From sequence record NC_048016.1: DNA of 64,000 nucleotides; one strand, given 5' to 3'. The notes beneath the pieces are model-generated. The model searched no databases. It worked only from the letters and a program-made list of their open reading frames with translations, and was not told the DNA's origin. A program made the position numbers and the translations under genes. Shown here one piece after another: positions 1,365 through 57,229 of the stretch (its first letter is position 1; the number at the start of each line of letters is the position of its first letter).

Positions 1365-1379
1365 TTATCTGACAATACG

Positions 1380-1951
1380 GCCGATGTGGGCTGATATCCC
1401 CATCGCGACGGAACGCGAGATTGCTGTTATCGCGAAGCGTAGACCGCAAGCAGACCCGTAAGCCTTGCGCAGCCGGGACACACAAAGCACTATTGCTCCG
1501 GCGGTAGGTGTCCCGTCCGTTCACAACTTATTCGATGAGCGAAACATGATAAGAGCCTTTGTGCAACATGCTCTTGGCCTTCTTCGGAATGTCATCAGCA
1601 ACCTGCGCATCTGGAGGCTCGATACTTATTGGTTATCAGGCTGTGGGACTGTACGCCATAAACCTTTTTCAGGACGCAAGTCCTCAACTCCGGCGCACGT
1701 CGTGAAGGACGAAGGTCAAGCACCGGCCCATTAAGCCGACTCGCTGACAAAAGCAACCTTCACCCACAATTTGAAAATAACTGATGGGATTGAGTTCCCA
1801 GATGCGAAAGAGTAGCTGTGTGCTACTGAGCACCTCCCCGGGACTGCTAAGCAGCGGGGGAATAGGGCCAACAGGAAAGTAATCGGAGGGGATGGCTCGA
1901 GAGACATTAGCCCGCGGGCACTGTTACTCACGACCTGCATCCCCTCCTGTT
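1380..1951 (+). ncRNA. Candidate large structured ncRNA (or 2-3 adjacent RNAs)
   Basis: No credible CDS. Helices include 1606-1614/1798-1806, 1885-1894/1938-1947 and AGGAC-GCAA-GTCCT, plus a loop-to-downstream pseudoknot. Confidence 0.6.
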
Positions 1952-1975
1952 TAAAGATGAGTTAGTATATATGTT

Positions 1976-2051
1976 GCAGGCATAGCTCAGTTGGTAGAGC
2001 ATCTGATTTCCAATCAGAGGGTCGTCAGTTCGAACCTGACTGTCTGCTCCA
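1976..2051 (+). tRNA. tRNA-Gly(TCC)
   Basis: Acceptor GCAGGCA/TGTCTGC, anticodon arm TCTGA-TTTCCAA-TCAGA, T-loop TTCGAAC, U73, encoded CCA. Confidence 0.96.
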
Positions 2052-2150
2052 GAAATGTAATTACAGGTTTACACTGTATTATGTACAAGACATGTGCGCT
2101 TAGCTAAACTGTTGCAAAAATAACAGGTTATCTCAGTACATATGTGCAAT

Positions 2151-2233
2151 GGTTGTGTCACGTTGGCGTGAGTTGGGTTTACGGCAGGCAAACGGACGTA
2201 AGCTCTTCGTGGTTCAATTCCACAGCACAGCCC
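2151..2233 (+). ncRNA. tRNA-like RNA without a canonical anticodon arm
   Basis: Acceptor GGTTGTG/CACAGCC, D-like TCACG-TTGG-CGTGA, T-arm GTGG-TTCAATT-CCAC. A 9-bp stem with a 13-nt loop replaces the anticodon arm. No CCA. Confidence 0.6.
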
Positions 2234-2255
2234 TCTTGTTATGTAAAAGAATTCT

Positions 2256-2340
2256 GGCGGGTTACTCAAGCGGCAACGAGAGCAGACTGTAAATCTGTTG
2301 ACTTCGGTCTTCGGTGGTTCGAGTCCACCACACGCCACCA
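2256..2340 (+). tRNA. tRNA-Tyr(GTA)
   Basis: Anticodon arm GCAGA-CTGTAAA-TCTGT, long variable arm, TTCGAGT, CCA. G5-A68 mismatch in the acceptor. Confidence 0.94.
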
Positions 2341-2345
2341 GTTAT

Positions 2346-2420
2346 ACACCCATCGTCTAGCGGTTAGGACCGCTGCCTTTCGAGCAGTTAACCGGGGTTC
2401 AAATCCCCGTGGGTGTACCA
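2346..2420 (+). tRNA. tRNA-Glu(TTC) copy 1
   Basis: Acceptor ACACCCA/TGGGTGT, anticodon arm GCTGC-CTTTCGA-GCAGT, CCA. Confidence 0.93.
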
Positions 2421-2423
2421 AAC

Positions 2424-2499
2424 ATTCCCGTCATCTAGTTGGTAAGGATACGACACTTTCACTGTCGGTACACGAGTTCGAGTCTCGTCGGGAATACCA
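2424..2499 (+). tRNA. tRNA-Glu(TTC) copy 2
   Basis: Acceptor ATTCCCG/CGGGAAT, anticodon arm CGACA-CTTTCAC-TGTCG, CCA. Confidence 0.94.
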
Positions 2500-2509
2500 A
2501 ACACAAGAC

Positions 2510-2601
2510 CGTAACCCTGCGGTGTGGTTAGTCGCCACTACTAGCGGTTACGCGATGCCCACTGCTGCGGGGTGTGTGATAGTGAGGTGGTTGACCCCAC
2601 C
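2510..2601 (+). ncRNA. Structured inter-tRNA element with two T-arm-like hairpins
   Basis: CGTAACC/GGTTACG helix enclosing GTGG-TTAGTCG-CCAC, plus GGTGG-TTGACC-CCACC. Confidence 0.4.
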
Positions 2602-2622
2602 AAGCGAGCAGCGAGCAATTTT

Positions 2623-2698
2623 AGGGAAGTAGTTCAATTGGTAGAGCGTCGGTCTCCAAAACCGGTTGTTGGAGGTTCGAGTCCTCTCTTCCCTGCCA
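2623..2698 (+). tRNA. tRNA-Trp(CCA)
   Basis: Acceptor AGGGAAG/CTTCCCT, anticodon arm TCGGT-CTCCAAA-ACCGG, G73, CCA. Confidence 0.96.
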
Positions 2699-2704
2699 AA
2701 CAGT

Positions 2705-2781
2705 AGGACTGTAGCTCAGACGGTTAGAGTGCCGCCCTGTCACGGCGGAGGTCGCGGGTTCGAAACCCGTCAGTCCTGCCA
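2705..2781 (+). tRNA. tRNA-Asp(GTC)
   Basis: Acceptor AGGACTG/CAGTCCT, anticodon arm CCGCC-CTGTCAC-GGCGG, CCA. Confidence 0.96.
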
Positions 2782-2786
2782 TATCT

Positions 2787-2876
2787 GGAGAATTGGATGA
2801 GTGGCTTAAGTCGCTCCCCTGCTAAGGGAGTGTATCCGAAAGGGTACCGTTGGTTCGAATCCAACATTCTCCGCCA
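2787..2876 (+). tRNA. tRNA-Ser(GCT)
   Basis: Acceptor GGAGAAT/ATTCTCC, anticodon arm CTCCC-CTGCTAA-GGGAG, long variable arm, CCA. Confidence 0.96.
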
Positions 2877-2882
2877 TTACAA

Positions 2883-3038
2883 TGACACCCGCACCTCAAA
2901 ACCCTGGGTATTGCACCCAGAAAAAGAGTGCTGGCAGCCAATAAAGGCATCCGTTAGTAACCGTAGCCTTCGGGCGTAGATGGTGAAGACCGCCAAGTGC
3001 AGCCTTTAGAACTCCGTGGGATTCGGAGGGGTGTCACC
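2883..3038 (+). ncRNA. ~155-nt tRNA-framed structured RNA
   Basis: Terminal stem TGACACCC/GGGTGTCA stacked on CTCCG-TGGGATT-CGGAG. Internal helices CTGGGT/ACCCAG, TAAAGGC/GCCTTTA and GCC-TTCG-GGC. Confidence 0.65.
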
Positions 3039-3064
3039 TACACACGTTAAAAGGATCATCCTCC

Positions 3065-3160
3065 TTGGGCGAAACCAATGGGCGCGCGGGGTGTATAGTC
3101 TGGGGCAAAGCAATCCCAGATGAGTCGTCTGACGTTAACTCGTCAGGGGGCAAGCGGCCA
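3065..3160 (+). ncRNA. Second structured domain between tRNA-Ser and the pseudo-tRNA
   Basis: Hairpins TTGG-GCGAAA-CCAA, TCTGGG/CCCAGA and CTGACG-TTAACT-CGTCAG; ends in GGCCA. Confidence 0.4.
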
Positions 3161-3169
3161 CACAATTTC

Positions 3170-3245
3170 TCAACGGTAAGCAAAACTGTGATGCACTGTG
3201 CTCGCGAACAGATTAGGTGGGTTAGAATCCCATAACCGTTGACCC
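3170..3245 (+). pseudogene. Degenerate tRNA or tRNA-like element, identity unassignable
   Basis: TCAACGGT/ACCGTTGA acceptor, T-arm GTGGG-TTAGAAT-CCCAT, CTGT/ACAG stem with 8-nt loop GCTCGCGA. D-loop lacks GG; ends in CCC. Confidence 0.6.
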
Positions 3246-3251
3246 TTTTAT

Positions 3252-3327
3252 TGGTGATTAGTTCAGTCGGTAGAACAGTGGACTGTTAATCCATATGTCG
3301 CAGGTTCGATTCCTGCATCACCAGCCA
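3252..3327 (+). tRNA. tRNA-Asn(GTT)
   Basis: Acceptor TGGTGAT/ATCACCA, anticodon arm GTGGA-CTGTTAA-TCCAT, CCA. Confidence 0.96.
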
Positions 3328-3332
3328 CCTTT

Positions 3333-3757
3333 GCTCTGAGATAACTGTGAATGGCATTCCGGAAAAATTTCATTCAACCTAACACGTGCGGTCGTCTCAG
3401 CGCAAAACCCTTTCGGGATAGTGAACCCTGCAGACCGGTGTGCTTGCATATCGGGTGTCCGCTATCCCGGACCTAATACAGACAGAAGCCGAATAGGTTT
3501 TTCTACTGCACATACGCCCAGAGCCATTACGGGCTTTTGTCTGTACCAAATAGGGCATGGAGAGAGGTTGGTGATAATAGGCCGCCCTGTCTGTGTCCGT
3601 CCCCGTTTGTCGGGTAGGTAGTTCGCTTCCCCCCAAGGATGCTAGCTGTGTCAGCCTGCCCGGCAATCCAAATTAGCGCGCTTGCTAATGAGTGTCTGAA
3701 CCTGACCCGTCGGATACTGCCCAGGTAGTTAGAAAGACTTCGACCACACCAGGGTAC
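3333..3757 (+). ncRNA. Candidate ~430-450-nt multi-domain structured ncRNA
   Basis: No credible CDS. 14-bp helix 3477-3490/3532-3545, CGGGATAG/CTATCCCG, CTGAGA/TCTCAG, GTGTCCG/CGGATAC, GGGTAGG/CCTGCCC. Confidence 0.62.
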
Positions 3758-3798
3758 CCCCTCTCCGTTTTGGAGAGGGGAATACTCTATTTTATTTC
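3758..3798 (+). terminator. Terminator closing the RNA island
   Basis: CCCCTCTCC-GTTTT-GGAGAGGGG followed by an AT/U-rich tail. Confidence 0.7.
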
Positions 3799-3802
3799 GG
3801 AT

Positions 3803-3819
3803 AGATATTATCTCTGTGA
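3803..3819 (+). promoter_or_regulatory. Putative early promoter motif AGATATTAT-N5-TGA
   Basis: One of 8 copies of the motif in the window. Confidence 0.7.
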
Positions 3820-3866
3820 ACGAAGATGTATTCACTTTAATCGACTGATCACAGAGGCCAGTAAAA

Positions 3867-4922
3867 ATGAAAAATCGTCACTTCAGTAATACCCGCAACG
3901 GTGCACCTAAGATTGATGCACTGAGCAGCTTGCAAGGCTTAGGCTACACAGCACTCCAGGCAAAGAATATTCGCATGTGGCTTCCTCGCCAGTTCGGCAT
4001 GGGTGGTCTGGCATTACCTCGGGCTAACTACGAGTTCTGGAAAGCCTACGAGATTGTCAAGGACATGCAGCAGTACCGCAAGACCAATGCCCTCTCTTTA
4101 CAATTCGCGGGCTACGCAAAGGGCCGTACCGTATTCCAGTTCACGGATAACGAGTTCTTGGAGTACCGCAGTCCGACACTGCACTCAACGGTGTGGTCAT
4201 TGGAGTTTGTGCGTCACTTTGGTAACGGCCTGTGGCGTAGTAGCACGGATGCCTTTGAAGGTGGTCCACGCCAGCTTGAGTACATCGGGGATAACCTGCG
4301 TTTGAAGCGTGGCGAGTTGGCAACCCGTATCGTGGAGATGGAAGCCACACAGACGGTGTACGACCTTAACGCAGACGGCGGCTACTTACCCCGTAACCTC
4401 GAACGCTACACCGAGAACGCGCGTGAGTCCATCGCTACGCTGTTCACCATGGCAGCGGTGTGTCACAGTAACCTGACGCTGAAAAGCGGCTGGAACCTCA
4501 ACCCAGAGCGTCTGTGTTTCACCAAGTACCAGCACTGCGATTCACATCGCTTAGCGTTTGCCATCGGTAAACTCTGTGAGCTTTACCCACAGAAGGAGCA
4601 GTCGATTCGCAGTCACGTGATTCGGATTATGCAGACCCCGAACCACATTCAACTGATGAACGATGACTTTATCCCCGGGGTGTATCATGAAGGTGGAAAC
4701 GTACTCGCGGTGGAACAACCAAATTTCGTTCTCAGTCCCGCCGGGAGTTTTATTCCGAGTGCCTTACAAGGAAGTCTGCCTGCCTTCTTTGTGAACCTAC
4801 CTTTCGCGTACGGGCCAAGCACCACCATCAACAAGCCGATGTTGTTTGTACCGAAAGAGTTGCGGGACGCCCACACCGAAGAAGAGTGGATTCTCGGTGC
4901 TCGCTTGTTCTTTAAACTGTAA
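3867..4922 (+). CDS. Hypothetical protein (351 aa)
   Basis: Long ORF bounded by the promoter motif and a terminator; no family recognised. Confidence 0.9.
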   Translation: MKNRHFSNTRNGAPKIDALSSLQGLGYTALQAKNIRMWLPRQFGMGGLALPRANYEFWKAYEIVKDMQQYRKTNALSLQFAGYAKGRTVFQFTDNEFLEYRSPTLHSTVWSLEFVRHFGNGLWRSSTDAFEGGPRQLEYIGDNLRLKRGELATRIVEMEATQTVYDLNADGGYLPRNLERYTENARESIATLFTMAAVCHSNLTLKSGWNLNPERLCFTKYQHCDSHRLAFAIGKLCELYPQKEQSIRSHVIRIMQTPNHIQLMNDDFIPGVYHEGGNVLAVEQPNFVLSPAGSFIPSALQGSLPAFFVNLPFAYGPSTTINKPMLFVPKELRDAHTEEEWILGARLFFKL

Positions 4923-4928
4923 TACGAG

Positions 4929-4954
4929 AAAGAGCCTGCGGGCTCTTTTTTTTT
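4929..4954 (+). terminator. Intrinsic terminator
   Basis: AGAGCC-TGCG-GGCTCT plus a T run. Confidence 0.85.
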
Positions 4955-4960
4955 CTTTTT

Positions 4961-4988
4961 TTACTTCATGCATGATTTCTTATAGAAG
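4961..4988 (+). promoter_or_regulatory. Putative middle promoter motif TTAC-N16-TATAG
   Basis: Same arrangement at 5409, 11299 and 43541-43565 (minus strand). Confidence 0.5.
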
Positions 4989-5004
4989 GCGATAGGAGAC
5001 CTCA

Positions 5005-5403
5005 ATGCAAACCACATCTAGCTTTTTCGAATTACTTGAAAAGGGCATCAAGCCAAACGACTTTATCGAACGTTCACGTATCGACGAGATTCACTCTGAC
5101 GTCATGGAAGTCATGGGCAGTCTGCCTATGTTCCAGAGTTGGATTGCAAGCCTAAAGCTCAGCGATGAGATGGCAATGCGTGACGGGGCCGATGTGCCTG
5201 TTTATACCACACAGTACAATATTTCCACCGCCGAAGCCGGTGCAATGCGCAATAACCCGAAAGTGGGTTTACGTTTCTTTGCGTCCATGGCACAGGCGTT
5301 GGTCGATCGTGCGATTCCTTGTGATGAAGTTTTTGCTATCGTAACAGACTGCATCCATTCCTTGGCCTACGCTACGGGTAACCGTATCGAGAACGTCCAC
5401 TAA
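5005..5403 (+). CDS. Hypothetical protein (132 aa)
   Basis: RBS AGGAG, ATG start. Confidence 0.85.
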   Translation: MQTTSSFFELLEKGIKPNDFIERSRIDEIHSDVMEVMGSLPMFQSWIASLKLSDEMAMRDGADVPVYTTQYNISTAEAGAMRNNPKVGLRFFASMAQALVDRAIPCDEVFAIVTDCIHSLAYATGNRIENVH

Positions 5404-57212: not shown

Positions 57213-57229
57213 TCGACCGAATCTGAGAT

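Follow-up and report, generated by a model that had tools for sequence, protein, structure and literature searches.

The DNA analysed here, 64,000 nucleotides of sequence record NC_048016.1 (the window), carries a 2.4-kb tRNA island at positions 1380-3798. This region is identical to positions 1380-3798 of Erwinia phage Wellington (MH426724) and 97.9% identical in phage Kwan. NCBI assigns Wellingtonvirus to the Chimalliviridae, the nucleus-forming jumbo phages, in agreement with the kind of phage that an initial annotation had proposed from the letters alone. ARAGORN and Rfam identify exactly the same eight tRNA genes, all on the + strand and all encoding CCA (8 of 8). They account for 631 of the island's 2419 nt and leave 1788 nt that are not tRNA. 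The initial annotation described eight tRNAs together with other structured RNAs; tRNA calls, fold z-scores and compensatory changes bear this out and delineate about ten conserved folded modules. It also counted 1.5 kb as neither tRNA nor coding sequence (CDS). This is true of about 1.6 kb, but 189 nt (1546-1734) are a conserved small CDS, which we call ORF-X. From position 1961 onward, the island and its downstream edge contain the following features.

1961-1975, + strand: conserved AT-rich box GTTAGTATATATGTT, adjoining tRNA-Gly
1976-2051, + strand: tRNA-Gly(UCC) (ARAGORN, Rfam)
2052-2150, + strand: S2a, AT-rich spacer, fold not significant against shuffles (z -0.4)
2151-2232, + strand: S2b, tRNA-shaped RNA, 82 nt (cloverleaf as minimum free energy (MFE) fold, compensatory pairs)
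2256-2340, + strand: tRNA-Tyr(GUA) (ARAGORN, Rfam)
2346-2420, + strand: tRNA-Glu(UUC) (ARAGORN, Rfam)
2424-2499, + strand: second tRNA-Glu(UUC) (ARAGORN, Rfam)
2500-2622, + strand: S3, three-hairpin module (compensatory pairs)
2623-2698, + strand: tRNA-Trp(CCA) (ARAGORN, Rfam)
2705-2781, + strand: tRNA-Asp(GUC) (ARAGORN, Rfam)
2787-2876, + strand: tRNA-Ser(GCU) (ARAGORN, Rfam)
2884-3038, + strand: E-A, expanded tRNA-like cloverleaf, 155 nt (covariation alignments A2 and A9, model R1)
3039-3165, + strand: E6, multi-hairpin module of about 125 nt (compensatory pairs)
3171-3245, + strand: E7, crippled tRNA-like RNA (sub-threshold Rfam tRNA match, compensatory changes)
3252-3327, + strand: tRNA-Asn(GUU) (ARAGORN, Rfam)
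3328-3752, + strand: S5, Wellingtonvirus-specific 3' hairpin array (compensatory pairs, fold z), consisting of E8 (3328-3410), E9 (3411-3475), E10 (3476-3548), a variable stretch (3549-3602) and E11 (3603-3752)
3757-3780, + strand: terminal GC hairpin CCCCUCUCC-GUUUU-GGAGAGGGG (4 compensatory pairs), then a U-rich tract at 3786-3797
3801-3823, + strand: promoter-like box ATAGATATTATC-N3-GTGA for gp14 (recurs upstream of genes)

The spacers are very probably genuine RNAs under selection, conserved for their folds. Their structure goes beyond chance, because compensatory changes in relatives keep the helices; this is the covariation in related phages that the initial annotation had suggested looking for. 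Compared with dinucleotide shuffles, the folds of 1365-1975 (z -4.6), 2877-3251 (z -2.6) and 3328-3866 (z -6.5) stand out, no shuffle being as stable in any of these three; those of S3 (2500-2622, z -0.9) and of 2052-2160 (z -0.4) are not significant when taken alone. The suggested Rfam search places the non-tRNA spacers in no Rfam 15 family above threshold. At the gathering threshold only the eight tRNAs are found across the island, and at E<=10 only tRNAs and sub-threshold tRNA-like matches, with no intron, ribozyme, riboswitch, ROOL, GOLLD, tmRNA or Y RNA. A blastn comparison reveals no paralogous modules, either in the rest of the window or inside the island. Scans of metagenomes and IMG/VR return the same phage group only, plus one chance coding match (L085; we refer to sequences used for comparison by such numbers where needed). 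In the literature searched, which covered jumbo-phage reviews and work on phiKZ, 201phi2-1 (including transcriptomes), SPN3US and T4, the elements are not described.

E-A, an expanded tRNA-like cloverleaf

E-A is the best-supported module of the island. RNAalifold on nine sequences and covariance model R1 give a four-way junction with its arms in tRNA order. The acceptor-like P1 (7 bp) pairs GACACCC (2884-2890) with GGGUGUC (3029-3035) and leads into A-CC, of which the CC is invariant (N-CC across the family). P2 and P3 are long arms, P3 being closed by a conserved GGCAGC/GCAGCC, and P4 is a T-loop arm, CUCCG-UGNNAUU-CGGAG (3012-3028). The set behind A2, A9 and R1 comprises 14 distinct sequences from Wellingtonvirus, Erskinevirus, Seoulvirus, Machinavirus and Moabitevirus. 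Across these sequences 92.3% of alignment cells pair and 16 of 28 pairs show changes on both sides; this result is reached by 0 of 500 shuffles, and slid controls are 36-51% paired. In Machinavirus P1 is wholly compensated (GGUACCU/GGGUACC). The module has no match to the Rfam tRNA model at E<=10 and is not called by ARAGORN.

E-A is also retained as its surroundings change. It is 93.9% identical to its counterpart in phiEaH2, compared with 72% for the flanking gene of a TAXI-type solute-binding protein and 73-92% for most shared tRNAs. Phage pEa_SNUABM_29 has lost most tRNAs and retains E-A, and the neighbours of the module vary, since it follows tRNA-Ser in Wellington and lies between Glu and Asp in other genera. 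The window holds one copy. A search of 185,579 species-representative genomes of bacteria and archaea finds no E-A core, and E. coli genomes contain none of E-A, E6 and E7; nothing therefore points to a host origin or a prophage reservoir. Serratia phage Moabite (L091), of a distant genus, carries two copies of the family, at 4001-4131 and 4604-4735, which follow tRNA-Tyr and tRNA-Ser and over both of which hypothetical CDSs are annotated.

Two smaller tRNA-shaped modules

The T-arm-like hairpins noted in the initial annotation are real, and they belong in part to three tRNA-shaped modules: S2b (2151-2232), E-A (2884-3038) and E7 (3171-3245). A search pattern made of a 5-bp stem closed by a 7-nt U...A loop and an immediately adjoining 7-nt strand with its pairing partner upstream picks out the eight tRNAs, E-A and E7 under strict settings, and S2b as well under relaxed ones. 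In E-A and E7 a 7-bp terminal stem is stacked on a 5-bp T stem with a 7-nt loop; S2b is built likewise with a 4-bp T stem. The stems of all three covary.

The perfect acceptor stem of E7, CAACGGU/ACCGUUG, is followed by A-CCC. Its T arm is GUGGG-UUAGAAU-CCCAU, and the 'anticodon' stem, of 4 bp, is capped by a conserved loop of 8 nt, GCUCGCGA. With 20.1 bits (3172-3241) on the Rfam tRNA model E7 stays below the threshold of 29, and it is not among the ARAGORN calls. E7 occurs only in Erwinia phages, in three or four genera at 93-99% identity (95-99% in those of other genera), and in pEa_SNUABM_29 both its acceptor and its anticodon-like stems carry compensatory changes. S2b, whose MFE fold is a four-way junction, combines an acceptor-like stem (GGUUGUG/CACAGCC), a D-like arm (CACG-UUGG-CGUG), a 9-bp arm with a conserved 13-nt loop (GCAGGCAAACGGA) and a T arm with a 4-bp stem (GUGG-UUCAAUU-CCAC). 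Only 3 sequences are available for it; they yield 4 compensatory pairs, the loop staying constant as the stem changes. In Rfam it matches only tRNA-Sec (17.2 bits with a shorter query; threshold 47), and ARAGORN does not call it.

A tRNA that decodes has a 5-bp anticodon stem, a 7-nt loop with U33 and a purine at 37, and an encoded or addable CCA. E-A, E7 and S2b depart from this pattern: the corresponding arm of E-A is long and without an anticodon loop, and the 3' ends read A-CC-U/C in E-A and A-CCC in E7. They are therefore tRNA derivatives unable to decode. All three keep the 'top half' of a tRNA, and other conserved domains take the place of the decoding parts.

Most tRNA-like non-tRNA modules, unlike true tRNAs, have the motif (C)ACAAU immediately on their 5' side (window positions 1765, 2146, 2879 and 3161; also in L015, L066, L088, L089, L090 and L008). 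It may be a processing or linker signal; ACAAT is only modestly enriched (4 versus 1.5 expected). More uncalled tRNA-like units, beginning with CACAAUGG, are found in L089 (about 4935-5010) and L066 (about 4050-4125); in the pEa_SNUABM_29 copy the loop is AGUCAAA, which possibly holds a UCA anticodon, and Wellington lacks this. An annotated tRNA-Ile(aat) of 121 nt in L005 (Asesino, 4378-4498) and L017 (9359-9479), not called by ARAGORN, looks like a tRNA with a large internal insertion; the 94-nt version in Huxley (L015, 5308-5401) is called.

Hairpin modules and cassette exchange

The other modules are arrays of hairpins. S3 shows compensatory changes in 7 of 28 pairs across 4 Wellingtonvirus sequences and is 92.6% identical to pEa_SNUABM_11; its third hairpin is T-arm-like (GGUGG-UUGACCC-CCACC). 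E6, with compensatory changes in 6 of 33 pairs (4 sequences), lies directly upstream of tRNA-Asn in relatives, and in pEa_SNUABM_11 between tRNA-Met and tRNA-Asn. The four blocks of S5 contain 4, 4, 2 and 8 compensatory pairs (2-4 sequences each). Its E9 is a whole-hairpin indel of 65 nt, missing in L012 and pEa_SNUABM_11; this indel and the replaced variable stretch rule out local open-reading frames (ORFs). Within S2a, positions 2053-2084 are 90.6% identical to L088 and L090, and the first 32 nt are conserved upstream of the Machinavirus tRNA-Tyr.

Module identities are mosaic. When 1976-3327 is compared with L012, L008, L014, L016 and L017, tRNA-Tyr is 81% identical to L012 and 99-100% identical to pEa_SNUABM_11 and L014, tRNA-Asp is 76% identical to L012 and 100% to pEa_SNUABM_11, and E-A is 94% identical to phiEaH2 and 73% to L017. 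Individual tRNAs and non-coding RNAs thus appear, from these identities, to be exchanged independently, and the island behaves as a string of exchangeable cassettes made up of true tRNAs, tRNA-shaped RNAs and hairpin-array RNAs.

A separate unit upstream of the tRNAs

Upstream of the tRNA array lies a block that contains ORF-X between two structured RNAs. GenBank annotates two tiny genes that overlap it.

1342-1461, + strand: gp4, tiny hypothetical CDS (GenBank annotation)
1381-1545, + strand: S1a, structured leader of ORF-X (MAFFT and RNAalifold)
1546-1734, + strand: ORF-X, unannotated 62-aa CDS, MIRAFVQHALGLL...GQAPAH (conserved frame, PHROG 26199)
1715-1947, + strand: S1b, structured RNA of about 230 nt (alignment A8)
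1731-1940, - strand: gp5, tiny hypothetical CDS (GenBank annotation)

The frame of ORF-X is open in 15 of 15 relatives examined, at 55-69 aa with in-frame indels, and its ATG is preceded by GGUGA or GAUGAG, which resemble a Shine-Dalgarno (SD) site. Identity between genera is 25-35%, despite which W23, G32, R37, A59 and P60 are invariant; substitutions at codon positions 1/2/3 number 76/34/100. The protein matches PHROG 26199, a family of unknown function (E 4.6e-6), and has no match in Pfam. AlphaFold (AF2) predicts, at low confidence, an N-terminal helix (2-30) and a disordered remainder (pLDDT 63), which is uninformative as to structure.

S1a forms hairpins at about 1381-1405, 1444-1469 and 1474-1516 with the conserved loops YUGAURU, ACCCGUAAG and ACAAAGCAC. 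In a 12-genome MAFFT alignment from four genera, analysed with RNAalifold, 20 of 28 pairs show changes on both sides, and blastn conservation to other genera is 60-73%. S1b starts within the stop region of ORF-X, where a hairpin covers the stop codon and overlaps the last codons. Its other helices are a T-loop-like hairpin that is invariant (UGGGA-UUGAGU-UCCCA, 1785-1800), a second hairpin, closed by a UGUGU loop, that covaries, a third that behaves as an exchangeable cassette, and a long stem on the 3' side (1885-1894/1938-1947). Alignment A8 is plain MAFFT, not fitted to a model, on 12 sequences from 4 genera; in it 95.7% of cells pair and 14 of 40 pairs show both-side changes, a result matched by 0 of 500 shuffles and set against 28-46% in slid controls. 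Positions 1610-1882 are 87.6% identical to phiEaH2, compared with 72% for the flanking TAXI gene.

The initial annotation treated the whole 2.4 kb as one tRNA-linked island, and in this respect it has to be revised. The 1381-1947 block is conserved in four genera even when its neighbouring genes differ, and in some genera a CDS sits between it and the tRNAs, which links it to ORF-X instead. As judged from its sequence conservation, the upstream unit is a separate conserved module, to all appearances an mRNA that encodes a small protein and whose untranslated regions are heavily structured. Outside Wellington and Kwan, by contrast, relatives do not conserve gp4 or gp5 as ORFs, and both overlap covarying RNA helices; they are probably spurious calls. 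Other spacer ORFs are broken in relatives by the 65-nt indel, by cassette replacement or by tRNAs. The annotation is corrected on these points: one real small gene had been missed and two doubtful ones called.

The S1b hairpin at 1820-1870 exists in two or three unrelated versions whose distribution is at odds with the phylogeny and the genera (L012, L016, L017, L088, L090), as if the versions were swapped by recombination. Wellington and Kwan share a divergent S1b 3' domain; the 99%-related contig L011 has the consensus domain and an extra small ORF. Positions 1606-1612 in ORF-X, just before the invariant Trp codon, complement the strand after the T-loop-like hairpin of S1b, as they do at the same place in Machinavirus, there with one compensatory change. 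We considered whether a helix of 1606-1612 with 1800-1806 makes S1b tRNA-like, and dropped it: it is missing in closer relatives and expected by chance.

Boundaries of the array

The GTTAGTATATATGTT box beside tRNA-Gly is the same in L011 and L012 irrespective of the upstream sequence. Related TATATATGCGAAA boxes occur in pEa_SNUABM_11 and Huxley, and 1961-1975 holds the only TATATATG in the window. The box may serve the tRNA array as a promoter or a processing signal. At the other end, the initial annotation had the island closing in a single terminator. The hairpin at 3757-3780 does covary, but a consensus terminator scan makes no call there because the T run begins 6 nt past the stem; hairpin and U-rich tract are likely the end of the transcription unit.

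The ATAGATATTATC box ahead of gp14 also lies upstream of gp19, gp34, gp42, gp43 and gp46 (+ strand sites 7146, 16064, 24201, 25589 and 29292), with a near-copy at 57228; the recurrent form is ATAGATATTATC-N3-(G/A)TGA. It is likely a promoter class of a phage RNA polymerase, to judge from its recurrence. There is none within 1365-3797 and one copy right after the terminal hairpin, an arrangement that fits one transcription unit and is not proof of it. The box at 3801 marks the downstream boundary of the island as we predict it. A scan for sigma-70 promoters finds none in the island.

Relation to known RNAs

The precedents that the initial annotation drew on are fair: T4 species 1 and 2 RNAs in a tRNA cluster, and GOLLD and ROOL (10.1101/2024.12.08.627333). 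GOLLD and ROOL are ornate phage-encoded RNAs of unknown function that often adjoin tRNA islands (10.1101/2024.12.08.627333). They share this address with the Wellington modules, which differ in being small (75-230 nt) and separable.

T4 is the closer comparison. Its annotation places two small stable RNAs, rnaC (species 1) and rnaD (species 2), inside the tRNA cluster directly downstream of tRNA-Arg, with rnaC (139 nt) one gene (rnaD) downstream of that tRNA. The MFE fold of rnaC is a four-way junction with an acceptor-like stem beside a canonical T arm (z -4.4). Like rnaC, E-A is a four-way junction of similar plan, with a terminal stem abutting a T arm and no encoded CCA, and like both T4 RNAs it lies within a phage tRNA cluster on the tRNA strand, between tRNA-Ser and tRNA-Asn; its 155 nt fall in the range of about 120-160 nt that marks RNAs of the species 1 type. 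However, model R1, run on the T4 region with filters off, gives rnaC only 5.3 bits (E 0.49), which is no detectable homology. The T-loop of rnaC is the canonical UUCGAAU and that of E-A is UGNNAUU; T4 belongs to Straboviridae and Wellington to Chimalliviridae, and the Wellington island has many more modules.

To tRNAs themselves (RF00005, clan CL00001) the likeness lies in cloverleaf arm order, the 7-bp terminal stem, U1 and A5 of the T-loop, and N-CC in E-A and E7. Unlike tRNAs, E-A, E7 and S2b have no normal anticodon loop, no G18G19 and no encoded CCA, and the arms of E-A are expanded. The bacterial Y RNA-like YrlA, tmRNA and viral tRNA-like structures borrow a tRNA-like domain for handling by tRNA enzymes. 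The ends of YrlA form a Ro-binding stem and not an acceptor, and tmRNA has a tag ORF and G3:U70. The Wellington modules have neither a YrlA-type Ro-binding end stem nor a tmRNA tag ORF or G3:U70, and they match none of these RNAs in Rfam or ARAGORN, which finds no tmRNA in the window.

The usual view of phage tRNA clusters is that they supply spare parts for codon usage or anti-defence; the intervening DNA is passed over or wrongly annotated as small ORFs. In this island, such DNA holds several covarying RNA families that have no Rfam entry. The island, mostly unannotated, carries a known kind of element, the stable non-tRNA RNAs encoded among phage tRNAs, over to nucleus-forming jumbo phages and adds several new families to it. 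The E-A family, found in five genera and built like the T4 species 1 RNA of unknown function, provides a comparative handle through its conserved loops, exchangeable arms and natural variants, and it offers concrete targets for knock-down, by antisense or Cas13, in phages refractory to genetics at the DNA level.

A model for maturation and function

One could envision that a single precursor is transcribed from about 1970 to 3797. An acceptor/T-arm minihelix is the minimal substrate of RNase P. Since such a minihelix suffices, the precursor could be cut by host RNase P on the 5' side of each tRNA and tRNA-like module, which would free all cassettes. Exonucleases and the CCA-adding enzyme complete the 3' ends of tRNAs; in the model, 3' sides would be finished by RNase E and 3' exonucleases, and the CCA-adding enzyme would complete the ACC ends. 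All cassettes, including hairpin modules between tRNA-type units, would be released as stable small RNAs, for which the T4 species 1 and 2 RNAs set a precedent. The tRNA-like handle would confer maturation and stability, the conserved non-tRNA loops and arms would be the working parts that bind some partner, and the modules would, most plausibly, act as mimics that occupy a host or phage factor recognizing the acceptor end or elbow of tRNA.

By analogy with tRNAs, we lean slightly toward tRNA-type maturation of the modules. A role as mimics is tentative, and we would not presently bet on it. Taken as a whole, a cassette array on one precursor that tRNA enzymes process to stable small RNAs, the tRNA-like ones serving as mimics, could as easily be wrong as right. 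A bolder version is improbable. It would make E-A, E7 and S2b trans-acting tRNA mimics, matured via RNase P and the CCA-adding enzyme, that titrate or redirect a tRNA-recognizing factor such as a host defence nuclease, an acceptor-end toxin or a handler of phage RNAs leaving the phage nucleus; host-sharing jumbo phages would trade them, and T4 species 1 RNA would be the first known member of a widespread functional class.

Several points weigh against this model. We infer RNase P cleavage and CCA completion from the shape of the modules only, and searches of the literature on Wellington and SPN3US-like phages turn up neither expression data nor end mapping nor work on processing. As for the mimic role, it is one conjecture of several. 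Alignment A9 was aligned to the model and is hence biased toward its structure. Positions 3-4 of the E-A T-loop vary, so E-A is without the D-loop/T-loop tertiary pair, and S2b has neither a CCA nor a CC end. The covariation of S3, E6 and S5 is based on only 2-4 distinct sequences. Finally, other promoter classes could split the proposed single unit.

The alternative that survives best is that the modules act in cis only, as spacers that order or insulate the processing of neighbouring tRNAs and shield the precursor from RNases, with no life after cleavage. Such a role would suit S3, E6 and S5, which lack tRNA-like ends, are genus-restricted and gain or lose entire hairpins, and some modules alone fold no better than shuffles. 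We nonetheless consider it unlikely: loop sequences are kept while stems change, E-A and E7 are conserved across genera as much as tRNAs or more, and E-A outlasts lost neighbour tRNAs and changes its neighbours.

It is doubtful that the tRNA-like modules are anti-defence decoys, an idea of the initial annotation and a special case of our model in which they soak up host enzymes that attack tRNAs (anticodon nucleases, acceptor-end-modifying toxins). The anticodon-loop mimicry that anticodon nucleases require is absent, and there is no link to any defence system, although the acceptor/T-arm half is preserved. Decoys would be traded by phages that share a host; E7, confined to Erwinia phages, and the mosaic identities that indicate cassette exchange agree with this expectation, but general recombination among co-infecting relatives explains the exchange equally.

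A large self-assembling RNA like ROOL or GOLLD, formed by the 1381-1947 unit or by the 3' array, is very unlikely. The upstream unit adjoins a tRNA island, for which there is precedent (10.1101/2024.12.08.627333), and comprises about 570 nt of dense conserved structure. Against this, the Rfam models of ROOL and GOLLD find nothing even at E<=10, and the unit includes a translated-looking ORF with an SD-like site.

We give still less credence to decaying tRNA pseudogenes with neutral junk between the tRNAs, an outcome that the initial annotation had named as contrary to its own reading. The scores of E7 (20 bits on the tRNA model) and S2b (17 bits on tRNA-Sec) invite this explanation, as does the rapid turnover of tRNA content between relatives, and three elements are indeed tRNA derivatives. 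Yet they are selected, not decaying, because the identity of E-A and E7 exceeds that of the flanking TAXI gene and most shared tRNAs and E-A is kept in pEa_SNUABM_29; helices held by compensatory substitutions and conservation of E-A in five genera already contradict decay. Least credible is that the spacers code for small proteins and not RNAs. One conserved small ORF, ORF-X, does speak for it, as does the annotation of gp4 and gp5, but these two are confined as ORFs to Wellington and Kwan, the remaining ORFs are broken in relatives, and Pfam yields no match.

Genomic setting

The genes that flank the island are annotated in GenBank as follows.

534-1364: gp3, TAXI-type solute-binding protein
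3867 (start): gp14

The order TAXI gene, tRNA island, gp14-like gene also occurs in Erskinevirus and Machinavirus, and Seoulvirus phages have the island and the downstream gene without an annotated TAXI gene. The island is syntenic across four genera, and its tRNA content turns over quickly from relative to relative. Pfam has no match for gp14, gp15 or gp16. In a 307-kb IMG/VR phage contig that also carries a TAXI gene (L053), ARAGORN predicts a tRNA with anticodon UUA at 5031-5115, a possible ochre suppressor.

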